From contig CDROCS010006357.1 of NCBI GenBank assembly GCA_977020255.1, positions 62,001-126,000 of the forward strand: 64,000 nucleotides of DNA. Direction: 5' to 3'. The position numbers were made by a program, and so were the translations under genes. The notes beneath the pieces were generated by a model. It made no database searches. It worked only from the letters and a program-made list of their open reading frames with translations, and was not told where the DNA came from. Source of the DNA: Obrimoposthia wandeli. Taxonomy: Eukaryota. Positions 11,279 to 61,849 of the stretch are shown here, piece by piece; positions within the stretch are counted from its first letter, which is position 1; each line of letters opens with the position of its first letter.

Positions 11279-12379
11279 ATGAAATTTACCGTCGAACGCG
11301 AACATTTATTAAAGCCTTTGCAGCAGGTATCTGGTGCTTTAGGTGGTCGTCCTTCTTTACCTATCTTAGGTAATATTCTGCTTAAAGTGGAAGAGGGATA
11401 CCTGTCGATGACAGGAACCGATTTAGAAGTCGAACTGATTGCAAAATTAGCACTAGAAACTGATTTTGAAGTTGGGGCGGTGACAGTGCCTTCTCGTAAG
11501 TTTCTCGATATTTGTCGTGGCTTGCCTGATGGTGCCAAGATTGCGGTTACGCTAGAAGGCGATCGTATTCTAATCCGTTCTGGCCGTAGTCGTTACTCAC
11601 TATCGACATTACCTGCCGCTGATTTTCCTAATATAGAAGATTGGCAGAGTGAAGTTGAATTCACGTTACCGCAAGGTCGCATGAGTCAGCTGATCCAAAG
11701 CACACAATTTTCAATGGCGCATCAAGATGTACGCTATTACTTAAATGGTATGCTGTTTGAAACTGACGGCAGCCATTTACGATCGGTCGCGACAGATGGC
11801 CACCGTATGGCGGTGTGCGCAATCGACTTAGCGCAAGAGCTGACAACAAAGCAGATCATTGTACCGCGTAAAGGGGTATTAGAACTGGTGCGCTTGCTGG
11901 ATAACGCTGAAGCGATGGTTGATATCCAAATCGGTAATTCAAATATTCGAGCAACCGTGAATAATTTTGTATTCACCTCGAAGCTCGTGGATGGACGTTT
12001 TCCTGACTACCGCCGTGTTATGCCACAAAGCAGCAATAAGTTTGTGGAAGCGAGTTGTGACGAATTACGTAAAGCGTTCTCACGTGCTGCGATCTTATCA
12101 AACGAAAAATTCCGAGGTGTGCGCGTTAACGTGTCAAAAGGCGAAATGCGTATAACCGCCAATAACCCTGAGCAAGAAGAAGCGGAAGAGTTTCTTGATG
12201 TTGATTATCAGGGGGATGACTTAGAAATCGGTTTTAACGTTAGCTATGTATTGGATGTGCTTAACACCTTAAAATGTGACCGAGTACGTTTGTCGCTAAC
12301 CGATGCTAATGCCAGTGCATTAGTTGAGGATTGCGCCAATGATGAAGCGATGTATGTTGTGATGCCAATTAGATTATAA
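11279..12379 (+). CDS. dnaN: DNA polymerase III beta sliding clamp
   Basis: MKFTVEREHLLKPLQQV, VATDGHRMA, GRFPDYRRV, C-terminal YVVMPIRL. Confidence 0.98.
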   Translation: MKFTVEREHLLKPLQQVSGALGGRPSLPILGNILLKVEEGYLSMTGTDLEVELIAKLALETDFEVGAVTVPSRKFLDICRGLPDGAKIAVTLEGDRILIRSGRSRYSLSTLPAADFPNIEDWQSEVEFTLPQGRMSQLIQSTQFSMAHQDVRYYLNGMLFETDGSHLRSVATDGHRMAVCAIDLAQELTTKQIIVPRKGVLELVRLLDNAEAMVDIQIGNSNIRATVNNFVFTSKLVDGRFPDYRRVMPQSSNKFVEASCDELRKAFSRAAILSNEKFRGVRVNVSKGEMRITANNPEQEEAEEFLDVDYQGDDLEIGFNVSYVLDVLNTLKCDRVRLSLTDANASALVEDCANDEAMYVVMPIRL

Positions 12380-12382
12380 AGT

Positions 12383-13462
12383 ATGGCACTTACTCGTTTA
12401 ATCGTTAAAGATTTCAGAAACATTGAAGAGTGTGACTTAGCTTTGTCCCCACGCTTTAATTTTTTGGTTGGCGCGAATGGCAGTGGAAAAACCAGTGTAT
12501 TGGAAGCTATCCATTATCTGGGGCATGGCCGTTCGTTCCGAAGCCACCTTACCAGTCGTGTTATTCGTCATGAGCAGCAAGAGTTGTTTATTCATGGACG
12601 AGTACTGACTAACAACCAATTAGAGCTTCCGCTTGGCATCAATAAAAAACGTGATGGCACAACGGAAGTGAAAGTCTCTGGTGAAAGCGGTCAAAAGCTA
12701 TCGCAATTAGCCCAAGTATTGCCCCTGCAATTGATCACACCCGAAGGGTTTGAGCTTTTGATTGGCGGTCCGAAATACCGCCGTTCTTTTATTGATTGGG
12801 GTGTATTTCATATAGAGCCTAAGTTCTATAATGCTTGGAGCCGGATTAAGCGACTCACCAAACAACGTAATGCACTGTTAAAAACGGCACGCAGCTACCG
12901 TGAACTCAGTTATTGGGATCAAGAGTTAGCACTGTTAGCTGAAGATATCAGTGTATGGCGAGACGAATACCTTATCGCGGTAAAACAAAAAGCGGCTGAA
13001 ATCTGCCAAGGATTTTTACCTGAGTATGATATTCAATTGTCTTATTACCGTGGTTGGGAGAAAGAAACCCCTTATGCTGAGCTGCTAAAACGTAATTTTG
13101 AGCGTGATTGTCAGCTTGGCTATACCGTAAATGGTCCGCATAAGGCCGATTTACGAATGAAGGTGGCTGGTACGCCTGTTGAAGATGTGTTGTCACGTGG
13201 ACAACTTAAACTGATGGTATGCGCATTGCGTTTAGCGCAAGGACTTCATCTAACAGAAGCAACGGGCAAACAGTGTATTTACCTTCTTGATGATTTTGCT
13301 TCCGAGCTGGATAGCCATCGGCGTGCGCTGTTAGCGCAACGGTTAAAAGAAACCAACGCCCAGGTTTTCATTAGTGCGATCAGTGATGAACAAATTGCAG
13401 ATATGCATGATGAAAATGGCAAGATGTTTCATGTGGAACACGGTAAAATAACCGCAGGATAA
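12383..13462 (+). CDS. recF: DNA replication/repair protein RecF
   Basis: GANGSGKTS Walker [24 protein letters not shown]. Confidence 0.97.
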
Positions 13463-13466
13463 TTAA

Positions 13467-15899
<2,433 letters not shown>

Positions 15900-15928
15900 A
15901 ACGTTCGGTGTTAGCCTCGTAACAACAC

Positions 15929-15957
15929 AAAACGCCACTTTTCGAGTGGCGTTTTTT
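15929..15957. terminator. Bidirectional intrinsic terminator between gyrB and flhA
   Basis: AAAACGCCACT-TTTCG-AGTGGCGTTTTTT perfect stem with A/T tracts on both sides, between convergent genes. Confidence 0.85.
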
Positions 15958-15985
15958 ATTGCTTAAATTTCAAATTCTTCTGGGG

Positions 15986-18088
15986 TTATCCCATATTACC
16001 CACAACAGCGACGCCTCTGTCATCAGGAATTTCATTAAACGATAATACCTGCAGACCACGCGCACAGACCCTTGAATAACGGGCTAGCAGTGGGCGCAAT
16101 TGTGGCAAGACCAATAAGATTGGGGTGTGGCCATTAATGCGCATGTTATCTAACACTTCAGGTAAGCTCCGTTGTAATTTTTCAATCACCGTTGGCTCTA
16201 AGGCAAAGCCGTCTAACTGGACGTGTCCTCCTGATTGTGCTTGGCTTAATGCCCCTAATAGCATGTTTTCTAATTCCGAAGAAAGAGTAACGGCAGGGAC
16301 TTCGGTTTTCATGCCGATTAAATTATTGAGCAGTACGCGGCGTAAAATACAACGAACATCTGCGGCCAATAGAATTGGATCTTTGGATAGTTCTGCTGAC
16401 TCGACCATTGAATTTGCAATGCTGACGATGTCAGACAGTGATACGCCATCAACGGTTAACTGACGGAATACACGCAGTAATTGTTGAGGGGTCAATTTTT
16501 GTTGCAGATCGTCAGCTAATTTACTGTTCAGTGTCGCAAGGCGTTCAATAATCCCCGCGACTTCTTCGGGGCTAAGAATGTCTTCAATGTAATCATTAAT
16601 TACCTTGCTGACATGGGTCGAGATAATGGTCGCATGATCAACCACGGTATAGCCGAGATTTACCGCTTTGTCTTTTTCTTGCACTGATATCCAGACAGCT
16701 TCCATGCCATAGGCTGGGTCTTTGGTGAGAATACCATCGACATTGCCATACACTTGGCCGGGGTTAATTGCCAGTAGGCGATCTATTTCAAGCTCGGCCT
16801 GGACAATCGTCGCGCCTCTCACTGCAATTTGGTACTGGCTTGCTTCTAATGCCAGATCATCTTTGACATGAATTTTCGGGATCACAAAGCCACGTTGTTC
16901 GGTTAATGTCTTACGGATACCGACTAAGCGGCTTAGCAGCTCAGCCCCCTGACGGCGATCAATTAAGCTTACTAAGCGAAAGCCGACATTTAAGCTCAAA
17001 GCATGAATGAGGGGAATGTCACTAACAATCAGTTCTTTATTTTCTGGTTGGCCGTGTTGCTCTACAATCTCTTCGGCGCGGACTAAGTCATCATCATTAT
17101 TTGTTGAGTCTTCTTTTTTTGTCAGTCGCCAGCCAGCAAAAGCAACTACGGCAGAAAAACATAAGAATGCGAAGTGAGGCATGCCTGGGATCAAACCCAG
17201 AATTAACATGATACCCGCGACTACAAACAGCACGACTGGCGATGCTAGCATCTGCTTACTGATTTGCTGTGACAGGTCGCTACTGTCAGCGACACGGGTA
17301 ACAATGATTGCAGCCGCTGTTGCCAATAACAATGATGGGATCTGGGCGACAAGACCATCACCAATGGTTAATAACGCATAGGTTTGGAAAGCGTCAGAAA
17401 ATGATAGTCCGTATTCGAACACACCAATGCTGATACCACCGATGATGTTAATAAACAGGATCAGCATTCCGGCAATGGCATCACCGCGAACAAACTTTGA
17501 TGCACCATCCATCGAACCATAGAAATCGGCTTCTTGTGCAACATCTTCGCGGCGTTGTTTAGCTTGAAGGTGATCGATAATACCGGCATTTAAGTCCGCA
17601 TCGATGGCCATCTGCTTACCCGGCATCGCATCAAGAGTAAAGCGGGCACTTACTTCGGAAATACGCTCTCCACCTTTGGTAACCACTACAAAGTTAATGA
17701 TTATCAAGATGACAAAGACCACCATACCGACAACATAGTTACCGCCGATCACCACATCACCAAAGGCTTGGATCACTTTACCTGCAGCATCGCCCCCGTT
17801 CTGACCGTTCAATAAAACCACACGGGTAGAGGCAACGTTCAGTGCCAGACGTAGCAAGGTTGCAATCAGCAAGATGCTCGGGAATACCGAGAAATCAAGC
17901 GATCGCTTACTGTATACGCTAACCAGCATCACGAGCAGTGAAAGTACGATATTGAAGGTAAACAACATATCCAGCACCATAGGTGGGATAGGCAGCATGA
18001 TCATCGCCAAGATGATCATAAGGACCAGTGGGATCCCCAGTTGTCCTTTAGCTAATAGCGTTAGTAGTGGGGCTAGTTTCTGTTTCAT
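15986..18088 (-). CDS. flhA: Lateral flagellar export gate protein FlhA (LfhA)
   Basis: EVSARFTLDAMPGKQMAIDADLNAG, FYGSMDGASKFVRGDA, TIGDGLVAQIP. Confidence 0.96.
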   Translation of the reverse strand: MKQKLAPLLTLLAKGQLGIPLVLMIILAMIMLPIPPMVLDMLFTFNIVLSLLVMLVSVYSKRSLDFSVFPSILLIATLLRLALNVASTRVVLLNGQNGGDAAGKVIQAFGDVVIGGNYVVGMVVFVILIIINFVVVTKGGERISEVSARFTLDAMPGKQMAIDADLNAGIIDHLQAKQRREDVAQEADFYGSMDGASKFVRGDAIAGMLILFINIIGGISIGVFEYGLSFSDAFQTYALLTIGDGLVAQIPSLLLATAAAIIVTRVADSSDLSQQISKQMLASPVVLFVVAGIMLILGLIPGMPHFAFLCFSAVVAFAGWRLTKKEDSTNNDDDLVRAEEIVEQHGQPENKELIVSDIPLIHALSLNVGFRLVSLIDRRQGAELLSRLVGIRKTLTEQRGFVIPKIHVKDDLALEASQYQIAVRGATIVQAELEIDRLLAINPGQVYGNVDGILTKDPAYGMEAVWISVQEKDKAVNLGYTVVDHATIISTHVSKVINDYIEDILSPEEVAGIIERLATLNSKLADDLQQKLTPQQLLRVFRQLTVDGVSLSDIVSIANSMVESAELSKDPILLAADVRCILRRVLLNNLIGMKTEVPAVTLSSELENMLLGALSQAQSGGHVQLDGFALEPTVIEKLQRSLPEVLDNMRINGHTPILLVLPQLRPLLARYSRVCARGLQVLSFNEIPDDRGVAVVGNMG

Positions 18089-38778: not shown

Positions 38779-39302
38779 TGAAAATTATTGATAGTGAAAA
38801 CAACTCCACACTGTATAACGACTTAACCAGCATTCAGAACATCAAAGCCAACTCTAATAAGCAAGAAGCGTTAGAACAGGCCGCAGGGCAGTTTGAAGCG
38901 GTGTTTTTACAAACGGTATTGAAGCACATGCGTCAGGCATCAGATGCGATGCAAGATGAAGAAGACGGTTTATTTAATAGTCGTCAGCAAAAGTTTTATC
39001 GTTCGATGCATGACAGCCAGATTGCGGTTGAAATGAGCCAGCAGCAGAGCTTAGGTATTGCAGACATGTTGATTAAGCAACTGGGTCAACATGAAGCATT
39101 TAAGCCACAGCAACAACTGGTCGCTGTTAATCTACAGGGTGAGGCGCTGCCTTCAGGGGCCCATTTACCGTCAGCGGCGGTGAGTCCGGTTATTAATGAA
39201 ACAGATCGTCCTTACAGTAAAGCATCGCAGCCACATTGGTGGCGAGATAGCACGCCCTTGTCTCTGCAACTTAATAACCATTTTGATGACGAAGAATTAT
39301 GA
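38778..39302 (+). CDS. flgJ: Rod-capping protein FlgJ (LfgJ), N-terminal domain only (no muramidase)
   Basis: ALEQAAGQFEAVFLQTVLKHMR...MHDSQIA...LGIADMLIKQL; only 174 aa. Confidence 0.88.
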   Translation: MKIIDSENNSTLYNDLTSIQNIKANSNKQEALEQAAGQFEAVFLQTVLKHMRQASDAMQDEEDGLFNSRQQKFYRSMHDSQIAVEMSQQQSLGIADMLIKQLGQHEAFKPQQQLVAVNLQGEALPSGAHLPSAAVSPVINETDRPYSKASQPHWWRDSTPLSLQLNNHFDDEEL

Positions 39303-42870: not shown

Positions 42871-43019
42871 GCTTTTTAGGGCTAGTCAACTAGACAGACA
42901 AAAAACGTCGTTAGATAGTCGTCAGCCATTTGCAGATAAGCATTCAGCCTTGAACCTTGAACTTTGGCAGTAATGTCACTCTTACTTAGGTTCATTATCA
43001 ATAAAGTGAGAAAAAGTGT

Positions 43020-43046
43020 TTAAGCAATTAAAAAATGGGTCGCATT
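43020..43046 (+). promoter_or_regulatory. Candidate LafS (sigma28-type) promoter of lafA
   Basis: TTAAG-N14-GTCGCATT about 100 nt upstream of the lafA ATG; motif shared with the flgM upstream region. Confidence 0.55.
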
Positions 43047-48716: not shown

Positions 48717-49472
48717 GTGCACAGTGCAGCAATGCCTTATGACGCGCAAGGGCTTCATGCTTATCAAAAAAGCCATCAACTTGGGCAGAAGGCGCGTGAA
48801 CAGCGGTTAGTGAGCAAACATGCAAGGTTAGTTAAGCGTGTGGTTCGCCACCTTACCGCGCAAGTCACAACGGTGATGTCGCTAGAAGATATGGAGCAAA
48901 TCGGCCTAATGGCACTGCTCGATGTTATTCGTCGTTATTCTGATGAAGATGATGCGTCATTAGAGCGTCTGGCTGTGCAACGGATCCGCGGTGCGATTCT
49001 TGATGAGTTACGCCGTATGGATTGGCGTTCGCGACGTTCACGCCAAAAAAGCCATGAATTACGAGATACCGAGCGGGTTTTAGCTCGTCAGCTAGGGCGT
49101 AAACCAACTGATCAAGAAATTGCCGCCGAATTGGATATAGAGCTGGGAGATGTTAAGCAACGTCGGGTTGATACCCAGGCCGAAAGCCTTACCAGTATGG
49201 AAGCCTTACAAGAAGGCGGTGAACAATTTTTTGGTTTGAGTTTTCAATGTAACAGCTACGAGCGCGTGGCATTGAAAAAAGCAATGGCTCAGGCCTTAGC
49301 GCGATTATCGAAACGAGAACAAGTCATGTTGAGTTTTTACTACGAACATGAAATGAATTTAAAAGAGATCGGCTTAGTGTTTGAGTTAACCGAGGCTCGT
49401 GTTAGTCAGATCCATAAGAAAGCCCTGAAAAATTTAAACAGTATGTTAACGGATTGGCGAGAGTCAGTTTAG
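48717..49472 (+). CDS. fliA: Lateral flagellar sigma28 factor LafS (FliA family)
   Basis: LEDMEQIGLMAL, RIRGAILDELRRMDW, LSKREQVMLSFYYEHEMNLKEIG.VFELTEARVSQIH. Confidence 0.93.
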   Translation: MHSAAMPYDAQGLHAYQKSHQLGQKAREQRLVSKHARLVKRVVRHLTAQVTTVMSLEDMEQIGLMALLDVIRRYSDEDDASLERLAVQRIRGAILDELRRMDWRSRRSRQKSHELRDTERVLARQLGRKPTDQEIAAELDIELGDVKQRRVDTQAESLTSMEALQEGGEQFFGLSFQCNSYERVALKKAMAQALARLSKREQVMLSFYYEHEMNLKEIGLVFELTEARVSQIHKKALKNLNSMLTDWRESV

Positions 49473-51340: not shown

Positions 51341-52522
51341 ATGAAATACTGTATAACCCCTGAATTTGTAAATAAATTTTCCTGCATCGCCGAGCACTGT
51401 GAAGATCATTGCTGCCATGGTTGGAATATTCATATCGATAGAGCCACTTACGGCTTTATGATCAAAAAAAGTGACTTAAAAGTAAAATCACTGCAGGTGA
51501 TTGAGCGAACGAAAGGTCAGTCGAGCTACGCTAAAATAAAGCTTGATGACAGTGGTGTTTGTCCGTTTCGTGAAAGAGGCGGCTTGTGTGAAGTACACAA
51601 AGCCCATGGCCATAAGCGGCTGTCAACCACGTGCCAGACTTATCCGCGCTTAAGCAAAGTGCGGGGAAATCAACAAGAGTCGAGCTTGACTCTATCTTGT
51701 CCGGAAGCGGCTCGTCAGGTTTTATTAAACCCATCGGCGATGAATTTTCACCGTGAGGCGGTAGCAGATACTAGCTTTGTTGCCGTCAAGCAGACTCGTC
51801 CTTTATGGTATGAGCAGGTACGTCAATTATTTATTGATGTGTTGTTATTAGATGCACTGCCTTTAGAAGAACGCTTATTTATTCTGGGGATGACGTTAAA
51901 GCAACTTGATGGCCATAAAGATGATATTGATTCATTTAATAGTACGTTGGTTTTTTGCTGTGAAAAAATAACCAATGGTGAGTTTAGTGCCTTATTTGCC
52001 AACTTGTCATCGTCATTGAACTTACATGCGGCATTTTTAATTAAAGTATTTAATGTTCAGCTGGCGCTTGGCATTGTGGGTAAACATGAAAAAGTACTTA
52101 CCCGTATGCATCTTTTGCATGAGCAATTAGTTGATACATTAGCCCCCGCGGGGGATGATGAAGCTAAGCAAAAAGAAATATTACTGCAAGGCTTTAATGG
52201 GAATTATCAAGACTATATTCATGCGAATCCCCATGTTTGGCTCAACTATTTTATCTACGGAATGTATCAACATGATTTTCCGACAGATAATATGTATGAA
52301 GTTTTTAGCGAATTAGTGACCGACTTTTTTATTTTGCGTGGTGCCTTAGTAGCCATTGCTTCTCAGCGTCCGCTGCAAGATAATGACCTCATTCTGGCAG
52401 TACAGACCTACCACAGATCACGAAGCCATGGCGCAAGATTTGGGCAGGGAATTGAAGGCATTCGCAAGGTATTAAATGTGGATGACCAGATGTTTCCGTT
52501 GATGTTGCTGAAAGTATTATAA
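51341..52522 (+). CDS. fliB: Flagellin lysine-N-methylase FliB
   Basis: F.C....C.DHCCHGWNIHID, CPF.....LCEVH, CQTYPR, LTLSCPEAAR cysteine pattern; starts 8 nt after the motB stop. Confidence 0.88.
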   Translation: MKYCITPEFVNKFSCIAEHCEDHCCHGWNIHIDRATYGFMIKKSDLKVKSLQVIERTKGQSSYAKIKLDDSGVCPFRERGGLCEVHKAHGHKRLSTTCQTYPRLSKVRGNQQESSLTLSCPEAARQVLLNPSAMNFHREAVADTSFVAVKQTRPLWYEQVRQLFIDVLLLDALPLEERLFILGMTLKQLDGHKDDIDSFNSTLVFCCEKITNGEFSALFANLSSSLNLHAAFLIKVFNVQLALGIVGKHEKVLTRMHLLHEQLVDTLAPAGDDEAKQKEILLQGFNGNYQDYIHANPHVWLNYFIYGMYQHDFPTDNMYEVFSELVTDFFILRGALVAIASQRPLQDNDLILAVQTYHRSRSHGARFGQGIEGIRKVLNVDDQMFPLMLLKVL

Positions 52523-52530
52523 GTTTATTT

Positions 52531-52558
52531 TAAGGAAGACTCGTGCTTCCTTATTTTT
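52531..52558 (+). terminator. Probable terminator after fliB
   Basis: TAAGGAAG-ACTCGTG-CTTCCTTA followed by TTTTT. Confidence 0.55.
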
Positions 52559-52689
52559 ATTGGGTTTTTACTATTTTAAATAAAACCCTTTGCATTGTTT
52601 TTTTTAAAGTAATTAACTTTTCATGACGATATCACCATTTGGATATTGTTATAAAAAGGGCGTTACTAATTATTATTGTGAGTGAAGTT

Positions 52690-53736
52690 ATGACGGTATC
52701 GGCGTTTAAAATTGCGGTTGACGATGGTTCAACAAATGTAAAAGTAAGCTGGATTGAAAACAACCAGTTAAAAACCATCGTTTCTCCAAATTCTTTCCGT
52801 AAAGATTGGAAAAGTGCAGCGCTGCGACGCGATAAAAAAGTTTATAACTACACCATTGGTACAACAAAATATACTTACGATGCAACGTCAGATAAAGCAT
52901 TGGCAACGACGCATGTTGATTATCAATACGATGATCTGAATCTGCTTGCTGTGCATCATGCATTAATGCAAACCGGCCTAAAACCATGCACCGTTACGTT
53001 AGTCGTCACACTGCCAATTACTGAGTTCTATAACTCAGAAGACTGCCAGCGTAATGAAGAAAAAATCAGCAAGAAACGTGCGAACTTAATGCGTGAAATC
53101 AGCTTAAATAAAGGCGAGCTATTTGAAGTTGCTGATGTTGAAGTTATGCCTGAGAGCTTACCTGCAGTGCTATCAACCTTGATAAACTCAGATTGTAATG
53201 AATTCTCACGTTCACTGGTTGTTGACTGTGGCGGTACAACGTTAGATATGGGTGTTATCGTTGGTCCGTTTGATGATGTTTCTGCTGTTTATGGTAATAA
53301 CGAAATTGGCGTTTCAATGGTTACTGATGCCGCGCGTAAGGCGTTGGCCTCTGCAGATAGCGACTCTAGCTACTTAGTGGCAAATGAACTGATTAAACGT
53401 CGCCATGATTTAGACTTCGTTAAAGAAGTCGTCAACGACGAATCACAGATAGATAATATTCTTGATAAGATTGAAATTAAAATTCAAGAGTTGGGTTCAG
53501 CGGTTGCTTATGAAGCAAAGAAATTTGCCAAAAACCCTAACCGTGTTTACTTAGTTGGTGGTGGTGCGCCGTTGGTATATGCTGCGATTCAAGCGGCTTA
53601 TGAAGTATTAGGCGATCGTGTGGTGTTGATTAAAGATGCGCAATCAGCATTGGCTCGTGAATTATGCCTATACAATACCGACGTTAAAGAGGTTCACATT
53701 GAGCGTGAAACCTTAGTTGAGGTCGAAGATGAGTAG
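52690..53736 (+). CDS. parM: ParM/StbA-family actin-like ATPase (plasmid R1-type)
   Basis: IAVDDGSTNVK (phosphate 1), SPNSFRKDW, YQYDDLNLLAVHHAL, VTLPITEFY, VMPESLPA (catalytic Glu), VDCGGTTLD (phosphate 2), GVSMVT, LVGGGA (adenosine); collinear with R1 ParM as recalled. Probable start ATG 52690. Confidence 0.92.
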   Translation: MTVSAFKIAVDDGSTNVKVSWIENNQLKTIVSPNSFRKDWKSAALRRDKKVYNYTIGTTKYTYDATSDKALATTHVDYQYDDLNLLAVHHALMQTGLKPCTVTLVVTLPITEFYNSEDCQRNEEKISKKRANLMREISLNKGELFEVADVEVMPESLPAVLSTLINSDCNEFSRSLVVDCGGTTLDMGVIVGPFDDVSAVYGNNEIGVSMVTDAARKALASADSDSSYLVANELIKRRHDLDFVKEVVNDESQIDNILDKIEIKIQELGSAVAYEAKKFAKNPNRVYLVGGGAPLVYAAIQAAYEVLGDRVVLIKDAQSALARELCLYNTDVKEVHIERETLVEVEDE

Positions 53737-54427
53737 TCGTCCGTTAAAGCGAGTTAATTACTCAATTTATCTGGATCCTGTCAATTCTAATGCTGACCGC
53801 TATGCGGTTGGCGTTATGCAGGGCTGGGCGAAAGATCGTAAAGAGATGATGTCAGATCCAAGTGCAGGCGTAGCCCTGCATTACAGTTTGCATATGCATA
53901 AGAATATTTATCTAGCAGGAATGTTTCTTTACTTACTTAGCCCCGCACTTAGTAATGCCCTTGCGGGATCGTTAACTGAAGAAAGAATTAAGATAGACAC
54001 GCTAGAACAACAGTTAGAAAACTGTGGGCTAGCATTACCCTCTACCAAGTCGTCATCGCCAGTGCTTGATACTCATGCATTGATTGATGAGTTGAAGGCT
54101 GTGGTAAATATGAAAGCGTTGATGGATGAAATTCAACAGATCAAAGCAGGGTTAGTTGAATCCAATACTGTAACTACAGCGGTACAAGACGGACTATCAG
54201 AAAGTGATATAGCGACATTGCAGCAGAATTTGGCAGCTGAAGTAAAAGCGCATAGTCAGCATCGAGAAATTGCTGAATTAAAAGCGCTACTGAAAACACA
54301 AAATCAGCTGATTAAGTCGCTTTCAAATGGGCAACCATTACCTGAAATTGAAAAGTCTGAACCTGAACTGGATTTATCACAACAAATTGCGAATATTCAG
54401 AAGGTGAAAAAGAAAGGTATTTTTTAA
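53729..54427 (+). CDS. ParR/StbB-like DNA-binding adaptor with long coiled-coil C-terminal extension
   Basis: Overlaps the parM stop by 8 nt (translational coupling). N-terminus RVNYSIYLDPVNSNADRYA...IYLAGMFLYLLSP resembles R1 ParR RTIAFKLNPDVNQTDKIV...ALTAGLALYRQDP by eye. Confidence 0.65.
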   Translation: MSSRPLKRVNYSIYLDPVNSNADRYAVGVMQGWAKDRKEMMSDPSAGVALHYSLHMHKNIYLAGMFLYLLSPALSNALAGSLTEERIKIDTLEQQLENCGLALPSTKSSSPVLDTHALIDELKAVVNMKALMDEIQQIKAGLVESNTVTTAVQDGLSESDIATLQQNLAAEVKAHSQHREIAELKALLKTQNQLIKSLSNGQPLPEIEKSEPELDLSQQIANIQKVKKKGIF

Positions 54428-54626
54428 TTATTATCAATAAAACCGCACGCTCTGCCAACCGATAATGCCTAGGGCGAAGTAACCGATCAGGTTGCTCATC
54501 CATCATGTTTTTATCGGTGAGTACTGCGCTTTGAATGAGGTGACTCGCATCAACAACAAGGCGTCGATTCAGAGTGTGGGCATTGATGGAATCGGATCGT
54601 TCTACAACAGTTTGCTCAGATATAGC

Positions 54627-54655
54627 CTTGAAAAATACCTTTCTTCCCCTTATAT
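54627..54655 (+). promoter_or_regulatory. sigma32 heat-shock promoter of ibpA
   Basis: CTTGAAA-N12/13-CCC(C)TTAT, similar to the CTTGAAA...CCCCATNT consensus. Confidence 0.75.
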
Positions 54656-54740
54656 CTATTAATGAAGAGCAAGACGCCTCAAGTAGGGTTATGTGCTTGG
54701 TTTGTCCTTTCAGGAAAATCACTTCATTACTTATATTATT

Positions 54741-54772
54741 TATATTGCTTCATTAGAAGGATAGGTATTATG
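54741..54772 (+). promoter_or_regulatory. ROSE-like RNA thermometer hairpin over the ibpA ribosome-binding site
   Basis: TTGCTT (54745-54750) can pair with AAGGA (54757-54761) with a bulged G, the U(U/C)GCU motif of ROSE elements; ATG at 54770. Confidence 0.6.
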
Positions 54773-55328: not shown

Positions 55329-55344
55329 TATTTCATGTGAAACA
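55329..55344. other. parS: parS1-type centromere site (2 mismatches)
   Basis: TATTTCATGTGAAACA vs consensus TGTTTCACGTGAAACA; intergenic between ibpA and avtA. Confidence 0.65.
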
Positions 55345-56798: not shown

Positions 56799-56814
56799 TG
56801 TTTCATGTGAAACA
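56799..56814. other. parS: parS1-type centromere site (1 mismatch)
   Basis: TGTTTCATGTGAAACA, intergenic between avtA and glyS. Confidence 0.8.
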
Positions 56815-56878: not shown

Positions 56879-56894
56879 TGTTTCACGTGAAACA
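56879..56894. other. parS: parS1-type centromere site (perfect)
   Basis: TGTTTCACGTGAAACA, 80 bp from the previous site. Confidence 0.9.
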
Positions 56895-61833: not shown

Positions 61834-61849
61834 TGTTTCACGTGAAACG
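61834..61849. other. parS: parS1-type centromere site
   Basis: TGTTTCACGTGAAACG, 10 nt after the mneA stop. Confidence 0.85.

Follow-up and report, generated by a model that had tools for sequence, protein, structure and literature searches.

The parM/parR-like pair at the end of a lateral flagellar gene cluster

We examined a 64,000-nt stretch of contig CDROCS010006357.1 (in the following, the window), in which a lateral flagellar (Flag-2) gene cluster is followed by a gene for an actin-like protein of the ParM type and an overlapping gene for a ParR-like adaptor. The features are as follows.

51341..52522 (+): fliB, flagellin lysine-N-methylase (NF038110, 3.7e-77), the last gene of the lateral flagellar cluster, given for context
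52523..52689 (+): 167-bp leader with the fliB terminator hairpin (52531-52553), a TTGCAT box conserved in Photobacterium (52590-52595) and a weak sigma28-like TAAAG(52605)-N15-GACGATAT(52625-52632)
52690..53736 (+): parM, actin-fold ATPase of the R1 ParM type, 348 aa
53717..53736 (+): junction consistent with translational coupling, with the GAGG Shine-Dalgarno and the parR ATG inside the codons for the ParM tail VEVEDE
53729..54427 (+): parR-like adaptor gene, 232 aa, overlapping parM by 8 nt (53729-53736)
53729..54043 (+): N-terminal ParR domain (about residues 1-105), predicted ribbon strand KRVNYSIYL followed by five helices
54044..54373 (+): variable middle region (about residues 106-215), predicted helices 115-148 and 158-199, the latter long and containing the conserved REIAELKALLK segment, then a disordered linker
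54374..54424 (+): predicted C-terminal helix (residues 216-228) plus the family signature ...QKVKKKGIF-COOH, the inferred ParM-binding peptide
43019..43046 (+): reference promoter-like element TTTAAG-N14-GTCGCATT upstream of lafA, recurring at 39099 (+, before flgK) and 31731 (-, before flgM)

The observation made in the first-pass annotation, i.e. an intact ParM gene followed by an extended ParR-like partner, is confirmed. ParM contains the nucleotide-binding motifs DDGSTNVK, PES, DCGGTT (in the alignment DCGGTTLD) and GGGA, which align with those of R1 ParM and are invariant in the clade described below, and it ends in the acidic tail ...ETLVEVEDE. It matches both ParM Pfam domains (StbA_N, PF06406, 7e-62; C-terminal domain, PF21523, 2.5e-37) and aligns over 314 residues to residues 3-311 of R1 ParM (1mwk, E 2e-68) with 45% identity. 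By contrast, searches of Pfam, NCBIfam and the PDB with the partner sequence alone returned no hit (for Pfam at E<=1), and homology appeared only with a family profile, which hits pB171 ParR (2JD3, E 3e-6). Family members from Ferrimonas (3e-13) and Pantoea (2e-6) pass the cut-off for PF10784. In the AF2 model of the partner, pLDDT is above 93 for residues 11-100. While Foldseek with the full-length model gave no match, the domain-tolerant aligner VIA-align returned pB171 ParR as the best PDB match (2jd3_B, Z 8.8, rmsd 3.1 A, 90 of 90 residues, next hit at Z 5.6), with residues 7-114 aligning to the whole ParR chain. Based on these profile and fold matches, the partner is a ParR/StbB homologue. 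W33, Y61 and G64 are invariant across 75 family members, the ribbon strand is conserved, and length varies from 176 to 392 aa across the family. The first-pass annotation had pointed out that the partner is about twice the length of R1 ParR; this is not special because the nearest plasmid ParR, a tandem protein to which the partner shows no similarity, is 220 aa. The idea that the acidic ParM tail pairs with the basic ParR tail was set aside because the codons of the ParM tail, which is conserved across the clade, contain the parR ribosome-binding site and start codon, and its conservation may reflect translational coupling rather than protein function.

A search for repeats in 52523-52689 and 54428-54766 found only short two-copy matches typical of chance, and no parC-type iterons were seen in 30 related leaders, including an alignment of 15. 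The sigma28-like element in the window's leader scores 9/14 and is not significant against shuffled sequences. A parS-like site lies at 55329, 902 bp after the adaptor stop codon, and is one of five such sites in the window, against 0.07 expected by chance. No integrase, replicon or transfer gene was met among the ORFs examined, and PADLOC gave no defence-system match.

A slowly evolving chromosomal clade

The pair belongs to a discrete chromosomal clade that occurs in Vibrionaceae, Aeromonas, Enterobacterales and Alteromonadales. Within the clade, ParM is 68-99% identical (about 70% across four orders), while the identity to plasmid ParMs is at most 54%. The pair is chromosomal in every clade locus, on contigs up to 5 Mb, and both genes are intact in all loci examined. 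All clade adaptors, and no plasmid-type ParR, end in [KR]x[KR]xKG[ILV][FW]; among 103 representatives of the adaptor family, 79 do so. About 170 alignment columns are invariant across 13 ParM sequences from four orders. The dN/dS of ParM is 0.02-0.05, equal to or lower than that of the stator gene lafT, and that of the partner is 0.15-0.27. Between Photobacterium and Enterobacterales, ParM is 72-75% identical, while LafT, LafU and FliA are 42-49% identical (43-49% for the stator proteins). The ParM tree, in which the clade comprises 22 lineages, follows host orders, and the plasmid outgroup sits on a very long branch. Contigs from RNA libraries cover parM and parR including the overlap, i.e. 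the pair is transcribed. Metatranscriptome depth is higher over the pair than over lafT/lafU, hinting at independent expression, although assembler depth is a poor measure.

Linkage to Flag-2 genes and a shared promoter-like motif

The first-pass annotation had proposed that presence at this locus irrespective of Flag-2 would refute the flagellar link. The link passes this test: in all 20 related species of Photobacterium, Enterovibrio and Parasalinivibrio, the pair follows lafU(-fliB), while ibpA/avtA/glyS are shared only by the two closest relatives. In P. profundum, the region missing from strain 3TCK (13,500-51,360) extends about 2.1 kb beyond the reported end of the flagellar cluster at 49,254, room enough for a pair of this size, although the paper does not name the genes there (PMC1239915). 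In Pantoea, Citrobacter and another Enterobacteriaceae contig, the pair lies after lafU-NlpC/P60, and in V. diazotrophicus it is convergent with flhB. Because the partner alignment is diverse and lacks a conserved stretch, metagenomes were scanned with the ParM alignment; here, the pair was found directly after fliJ with a 30-bp gap (lineage L039, inside the fliE-J operon), upstream of convergently oriented flhA, and upstream of convergently oriented fliG-fliF. After dereplication, 10 of 19 informative clade lineages place the pair next to or inside Flag-2 clusters, in at least five different arrangements, against 0 of 4 plasmid-type lineages. The short distances in L039 and in Enterobacterales (45-70 bp between the NlpC/P60 gene and parM) suggest co-transcription, whereas in the window a terminator separates fliB from parM.

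The remaining nine informative lineages have no flagellar gene within 8-10 kb, a count that does not exclude, for most of them (e.g. Shewanella pealeana, Ferrimonas, Moritella and Thaumasiovibrio), a Flag-2 cluster elsewhere in the genome. A. schubertii and A. simiae do carry lafA elsewhere (PMC7250499). Five of these nine lineages carry the promoter-like motif TTTAAG-N15-GTCGC, with significant or high scores. In a scan of the whole window, this motif precedes lafA, flgK and flgM, and upstream sequences of lafA in relatives were also compared. It is upstream of stand-alone parM in A. schubertii (shuffle p 0.009), A. simiae (0.002), S. pealeana (0.022) and F. balearica (<0.001), and in another stand-alone group. 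Eight of 25 stand-alone metagenome loci score 11 or more out of 14, while none of the 36 Flag-adjacent metagenome loci and none of the 12 plasmid-type loci do so. Lateral sigma28 promoters have been defined previously (PMC165745, PMC3624516); the putative assignment of the motif to the lateral sigma28 rests on its position before these classical late flagellar genes and not on experiment. The pair is an accessory and not a core Flag-2 component: none of 5,426 complete E. coli genomes holds it, and V. parahaemolyticus was not among the 120 best ParM hits, i.e. Flag-2 works without the pair in some hosts.

A model for a proposed domesticated ParM/ParR module and its alternatives

Based on these data, we suggest with moderate confidence that the pair is a chromosomally domesticated type II (ParM/ParR) actin-like module that belongs to the lateral-flagellar, swarmer-cell gene set rather than a plasmid or chromosome-origin partition locus, i.e. 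a plasmid-segregation machine re-used for a cellular job linked to surface motility. Our analysis demonstrates that ParM retains every nucleotide-binding motif and is under very strong purifying selection, that the partner is a ParR homologue, and that the linkage and promoter-like elements exist as sequence patterns. The remaining steps of the model are inferred. ParM would most likely form ATP-driven dynamic filaments like R1 ParM; the N-terminal ribbon-helix-helix domain of the adaptor would dimerise and bind a target, most probably DNA; the coiled-coil and linker of variable length would act as a tether; and the C-terminal helix ...KVKKKG(I/L)(F/W) would dock onto ParM filament ends as the C-terminal helix of R1 ParR and CorR does. 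Expression appears to be coupled to that of lateral flagellar genes, in some lineages by location in or just after flagellar operons and, in about half of the unlinked lineages, by the element shared with lafA, flgK and flgM, although this regulation is also inferred. In this model, the likely role is to space or move an as yet unidentified cargo, which could be a DNA locus, the nucleoid or flagellar assembly sites, along the elongated, multi-nucleoid, laterally flagellated cell. We found no paper describing this link.

The interpretation in the first-pass annotation, which considered the pair either a fixed remnant of the mobile element that delivered the flagellar cluster or a domesticated cytoskeletal pair that could position lateral flagella or help segregate origin-proximal DNA, is supported only in part: the domesticated alternative is favored and the flagellar link passes the refutation test proposed there, while a tie to the origin-proximal gyrB-ibpA site or the parS cluster is not supported because the pair sits elsewhere in other genera.

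Other explanations are less likely. A general chromosomal ParMR cytoskeleton with a role unrelated to flagella, e.g. in cell shape or organisation, in which case proximity to Flag-2 would reflect shared history on an island or insertion at a permissive cluster edge, is the strongest of these but remains unlikely. It is in agreement with the stand-alone pairs among housekeeping genes in Aeromonas (where the site is syntenic), Shewanella, Ferrimonas, Moritella, Thaumasiovibrio and Photobacterium sp. DA100 chromosome 2, with the precedent of CorMR, a repurposed chromosomal ParMR (bioRxiv 10.1101/2025.06.27.661541), and with expression that appears not to be proportional to that of the laf genes. 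However, by our rough estimate, a random locus would lie that close to a 40-kb cluster in about 1% of cases, and here at least five juxtapositions exist, one of them inside the fliE-J operon, while five of the nine stand-alone lineages carry the lafA/flgK/flgM-type motif.

Even less likely is a working ParMRC system that segregates chromosomal DNA, either the origin-proximal region in this genome or the Flag-2 island itself, through a centromere bound by the ParR domain. While the ParR fold with its conserved ribbon strand is retained and the pair lies within the cluster of five parS-like sites near gyrB, no parC-type iterons were found upstream or downstream, only 30-70 bp lie upstream of parM in several lineages, the genomic position varies widely and is not origin-proximal in general, parS belongs to the unrelated ParABS system, and no replicon or excision genes were met nearby among the ORFs examined. 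Finally, a decaying or selfish passenger without current function is very unlikely. The closest characterised relatives are plasmid ParM/ParR, the flagellar cluster is a variable island in P. profundum (PMC1239915), and GC content dips to 0.35 at 52500-53000, covering the AT-rich leader and the start of parM; nevertheless, the selection and distribution data, the conserved adaptor motif and the transcription of the pair largely refute this reading.

The pair shares with ParM/ParR/parC of plasmid R1 and ParR (StbB) of pB171 the ParM fold and motifs, the gene order parM-parR, the N-terminal adaptor domain, and a basic and hydrophobic C-terminal helix like the ParM-binding helix of ParR. However, it is chromosomal and associated with flagellar genes, with no replicon and no detectable parC iterons; its adaptor is twice as long, with a coiled-coil insert and an invariant KKKG(I/L)(F/W) end that plasmid ParRs lack; and its ParM evolves far more slowly than plasmid ParMs. 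CorMR of Anabaena, which controls cell shape, is also a chromosome-encoded pair without parC repeats, is vertically conserved in one group of bacteria, and its adaptor C-terminal helix binds the filament. However, CorR has an N-terminal amphipathic membrane helix and CorM a 40-aa N-terminal disordered region, while, as judged from sequence without an amphipathicity calculation, the adaptor described here begins MSSRPLKRVNYS with the ribbon strand directly following at about residue 7, and ParM begins MTVSAFKIAVDDGST, starting 7 residues before DDGST. Moreover, CorMR shares only 20-30% identity with other ParMR proteins, whereas this ParM is R1-like, and CorMR has no flagellar link. The genome-encoded cParMs of Desulfitobacterium hafniense and Clostridium botulinum (PMC12270681) and the chromosomal ParMR reported in K. 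pneumoniae are likewise chromosomal ParMs of unknown function; the cParMs are from Firmicutes and distant in sequence, the K. pneumoniae ParM is described as about 54% identical to R1 ParM, which is the plasmid-type level, and none of these is reported with flagellar genes. The FlhF/FlhG system, an SRP-type GTPase and a MinD/ParA-type ATPase that set the place and number of polar flagella, is similar by analogy only, i.e. as a nucleotide-driven positioning module encoded within a flagellar gene cluster; the protein families are unrelated, and no experimental link between ParMR and flagellar placement exists.

How bacteria place many lateral (peritrichous) flagella and how long swarmer cells organise their contents is largely unknown, and only polar flagella have a known positioning system. 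We speculate that the pair is a dedicated actin-like cytoskeleton of the lateral-flagellar/swarmer programme, in which ParM filaments captured by a tethering ParR would space flagellar assembly sites or nucleoids along the elongated surface-adapted cell. This tentative possibility, which the data do not exclude, would make the pair the lateral-flagella counterpart of FlhF/FlhG and, after cyanobacterial CorMR, a second independent case of a plasmid-segregation machine becoming a cellular cytoskeleton. Because the clade is compact and clearly bounded, it provides a concrete two-gene candidate that can be deleted and imaged in tractable hosts such as Photobacterium profundum, Citrobacter, Pantoea and Aeromonas. 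Genome annotation currently labels all these genes "plasmid segregation protein ParM" or "hypothetical protein", which is misleading.

An intact ParM gene and a ParR homologue

The region holds two co-oriented genes directly after the last lateral flagellar genes lafT, lafU and fliB:

52690-53736, parM, encoding a protein of 348 aa
53729-54427, the partner gene, encoding a protein of 232 aa and overlapping parM by 8 nt

The ParM protein matches both Pfam ParM domains (7e-62 and 2.5e-37) and aligns end to end with R1 ParM (1mwk, E 2e-68) with all nucleotide-binding motifs in place. The GAGG ribosome-binding site and the ATG of the partner gene are embedded in the codons of the ParM tail VEVEDE. 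Every feature listed in the first-pass annotation, which described an intact actin-type partition module at the end of the lateral flagellar island, is present, and its observation is correct. The annotation also placed a parS site approximately 900 bp downstream of the pair. This parS-like site, 902 bp downstream, is real and is one of five in the window (TGTTTCACGTGAAACA with up to 2 mismatches), against 0.07 expected by chance:

13425-13440, parS-like site
55329-55344, parS-like site
56799-56814, parS-like site
56879-56894, parS-like site
61834-61849, parS-like site

Because these sites lie on both sides of the lateral flagellar island, the island, including parMR, appears to be inserted within the origin-proximal parS cluster of the ParABS system.

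On its own, the partner protein had no hit in Pfam, NCBIfam or PDB sequences. Its homologues form a small, sharply bounded family, with 30 clusters in a word-indexed search, all annotated as hypothetical, and about 100 representatives among 1.84 billion proteins. However, family members from Ferrimonas and Pantoea pass the threshold of the Pfam Plasmid_stab_B (StbB/ParR) model, and a profile built from 75 sequences hits pB171 ParR (2JD3) at E 3e-6. The AlphaFold2 model of the partner has a mean pLDDT of 82, and above 93 for residues 11-100. A search with the whole model in Foldseek missed the ParR similarity, while in a comparison with 48,161 PDB chains the best match was pB171 ParR, with a Z score of 8.8 and 90 of 90 residues aligned, and with the next hit at Z 5.6. 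Based on these data, we conclude that the partner is a ParR. Its architecture comprises a ParR domain at about residues 1-105, a middle region of variable length with a long helix (residues 158-199) in the model, a disordered linker, and a terminal helix ending in KVKKKGIF. Of 103 family representatives, 79 end in [KR]x[KR]xKG[ILV][FW].

Conservation of the pair and its separation from plasmid-type systems

The pair is neither a remnant nor a feature specific to this locus. The dN/dS of ParM against five to seven relatives is 0.02-0.05, which is as low as or lower than that of the stator gene lafT, while that of the partner is 0.15-0.27. Between Photobacterium and Enterobacterales, ParM is 72-75% identical, while LafT is 48-49%, LafU 42-44%, FliA_L 42-43% and FliD 29% identical. 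Moreover, 13 ParM proteins from four orders share about 170 invariant columns.

The best plasmid ParM is 54% identical, and a metagenome scan shows a clean gap between at least 68% identity for the clade and at most 54% for the plasmid type. In the ParM tree, Aeromonas, Enterobacterales, Alteromonadales and Vibrionaceae group separately, while the plasmid outgroup sits on a very long branch. All clade adaptors carry the terminal motif, and no plasmid-type ParR does. By contrast, the length of the partner, which the first-pass annotation had put at about twice that of R1 ParR, is not distinctive on its own, because the nearest plasmid ParR is itself 220 aa. This protein, encoded next to the closest plasmid ParM on the Enterobacter asburiae plasmid pTMTA61661 (locus L030, 3475-4137), has no sequence similarity to the partner and looks like an internal tandem duplication of the ribbon-helix-helix unit (YSFYLHSDDRTD... 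and YTLTLQDDRSSE...).

Linkage to lateral flagellar genes

A scan of one genome per species returned 20 loci from Photobacterium, Enterovibrio and Parasalinivibrio. In all 20, the pair follows lafT-lafU(-fliB), while the downstream genes ibpA, avtA and glyS are shared only by the two closest relatives. Thus, the pair travels with the flagellar cluster and not with the gyrB-ibpA/parS site. Among these loci, fliB is present in some and absent in others. P. frigidiphilum and P. indicum (loci L001:8592-8962 and L002:8605-8962, compared with 51341-52522 in the window) lack a full fliB but keep its last ~50 bp in front of the same terminator, which indicates a recent internal deletion of fliB in those species. 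In P. profundum, the region absent from strain 3TCK spans 13,500-51,360, while the flagellar genes are reported to end at 49,254, and the extra 2.1 kb is enough for a pair of this size (PMC1239915).

Outside this group, the pair takes several positions. In Pantoea, Citrobacter and another Enterobacteriaceae contig, it follows lafU-NlpC/P60 with only 45-70 bp before parM. In these Enterobacterales Flag-2 clusters (loci L023:9308-9928, L027:9145-9957 and L035:7244-7945), the gene for the NlpC/P60-family peptidoglycan hydrolase sits between lafU and parM in the same orientation and with short gaps, and it may be part of the same accessory module. In V. diazotrophicus (locus L028), the pair is convergent with flhB of the lateral cluster. 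Here, the lateral export operon next to the pair ends with flhB, and no flhA homologue was detected between flhB and the pair (12232-16279), unlike in the window, where flhA follows flhB. In the metagenome contig L039, the pair lies directly after fliJ with a 30-bp gap, as the last genes of fliEFGHIJ. Finally, it lies upstream of a convergently oriented flhA in an Aeromonas aquatica-like contig and upstream of convergently oriented fliG and fliF in another contig.

After dereplication at 90% ParM identity, 10 of 19 informative clade lineages are adjacent to Flag-2-type genes, in at least five architectures, while none of the 4 informative plasmid-type lineages is. By our own rough estimate, a random locus lies within 10 kb of a 40-kb cluster in about 1% of cases. 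However, Flag-2 exists without the pair in E. coli, in which none of 5,426 complete genomes has it.

Promoter-like motifs and a possible role in the lateral flagellar programme

To address the unlinked copies, we scanned the whole window with TTTAAG-N14/15-GTCGCATT. The only sites scoring 12 or more out of 14 precede three genes:

43019, before lafA
39099-39127 (+), inside the end of flgJ just before flgK
31731-31704 (-), between flgA and flgM, before flgM

lafA, flgK and flgM are classical late (sigma28-class) flagellar genes, and the element TTTAAG-N14/15-GTCGC(T)xT gives a three-site set for the lateral late-class promoter, as inferred from position, in this genome. We then applied the same fixed consensus to parM leaders and found that it is significant against dinucleotide shuffles in four stand-alone loci, i.e. 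in A. schubertii (11/14, p 0.009), A. simiae (12/14, p 0.002), S. pealeana (11/14, p 0.022) and F. balearica (13/14, p < 0.001). In the two Aeromonas species, the two boxes are conserved while the spacer differs, and both species possess lafA elsewhere in their genomes (PMC7250499). Another stand-alone group carries TTTTAG-N15-GTCGCCxT. Among the metagenome loci, 8 of the 25 stand-alone loci score 11 or more out of 14, while none of the 36 Flag-adjacent loci and none of the 12 plasmid-type loci do so. The pattern is complementary in that the pair has its own late-flagellar-type promoter-like motif when unlinked and none when it is inside or behind flagellar operons. This is what membership of the lateral flagellar regulon would predict, although four stand-alone lineages show no motif and the regulation itself is inferred from these sequence patterns.

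The 167-bp leader in the window has a terminator after fliB, a TTGCAT box conserved in Photobacterium, and only a weak sigma28-like match (9/14, not significant). In marine-sediment RNA libraries, contigs from close relatives cover parM and parR, with one spanning the gene overlap and one starting at 52584, and their depth is higher than over lafT/lafU. This argues for expression, but perhaps not in proportion to the flagellar genes; contig depth is a poor measure and DNA carry-over cannot be excluded.

The first-pass annotation had proposed that the pair is either a fixed remnant of the mobile element that delivered the flagellar cluster or a domesticated cytoskeletal pair that could position lateral flagella or help segregate the origin-proximal DNA. 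Our data support this interpretation in part. A domesticated cytoskeletal pair linked to lateral flagella is the best supported reading, and we consider it somewhat more likely than not, while a role tied to the origin or the parS sites and the remnant reading are not supported. The intact genes, the ParR homology of the partner, the conservation of the clade and its recurrent linkage to Flag-2 genes are direct results of the analysis, whereas the cytoskeletal function is inferred from sequence alone. No parC-type iterons were found near the pair in any lineage, so no cargo can be assigned to it. Chromosomal ParMR systems have been described, including CorMR of Anabaena, which is repurposed for cell shape through a membrane-binding helix in the adaptor, the cParMs of Desulfitobacterium and C. 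botulinum, and a K. pneumoniae chromosomal ParMR without an assigned function. None of these papers mentions flagella, the comparative Flag-2 study of Enterobacterales does not mention ParM, StbA or actin, and full-text searches combining ParM, StbA or actin-like with lateral flagella or Flag-2 found no description of this link. The pair is best regarded as part of a chromosomal ParMR clade associated with Flag-2.

The sequence flanking the pair has two further features. The GC content drops to 0.35 at 52500-53000, which is the lowest value in the 44-64 kb part of the window, and this stretch covers the AT-rich parM leader and the first codons of parM. At the other end, an 18-nt inverted repeat (94% complementary) pairs the last codons of parR (KKGIF-stop; 54410-54427) with a site 200 bp downstream (54628-54645). 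The intervening stretch is rich in indels among close relatives and is overlapped by a 136-aa minus-strand ORF (54312-54722), and it could be a gene remnant or the junction of the island.
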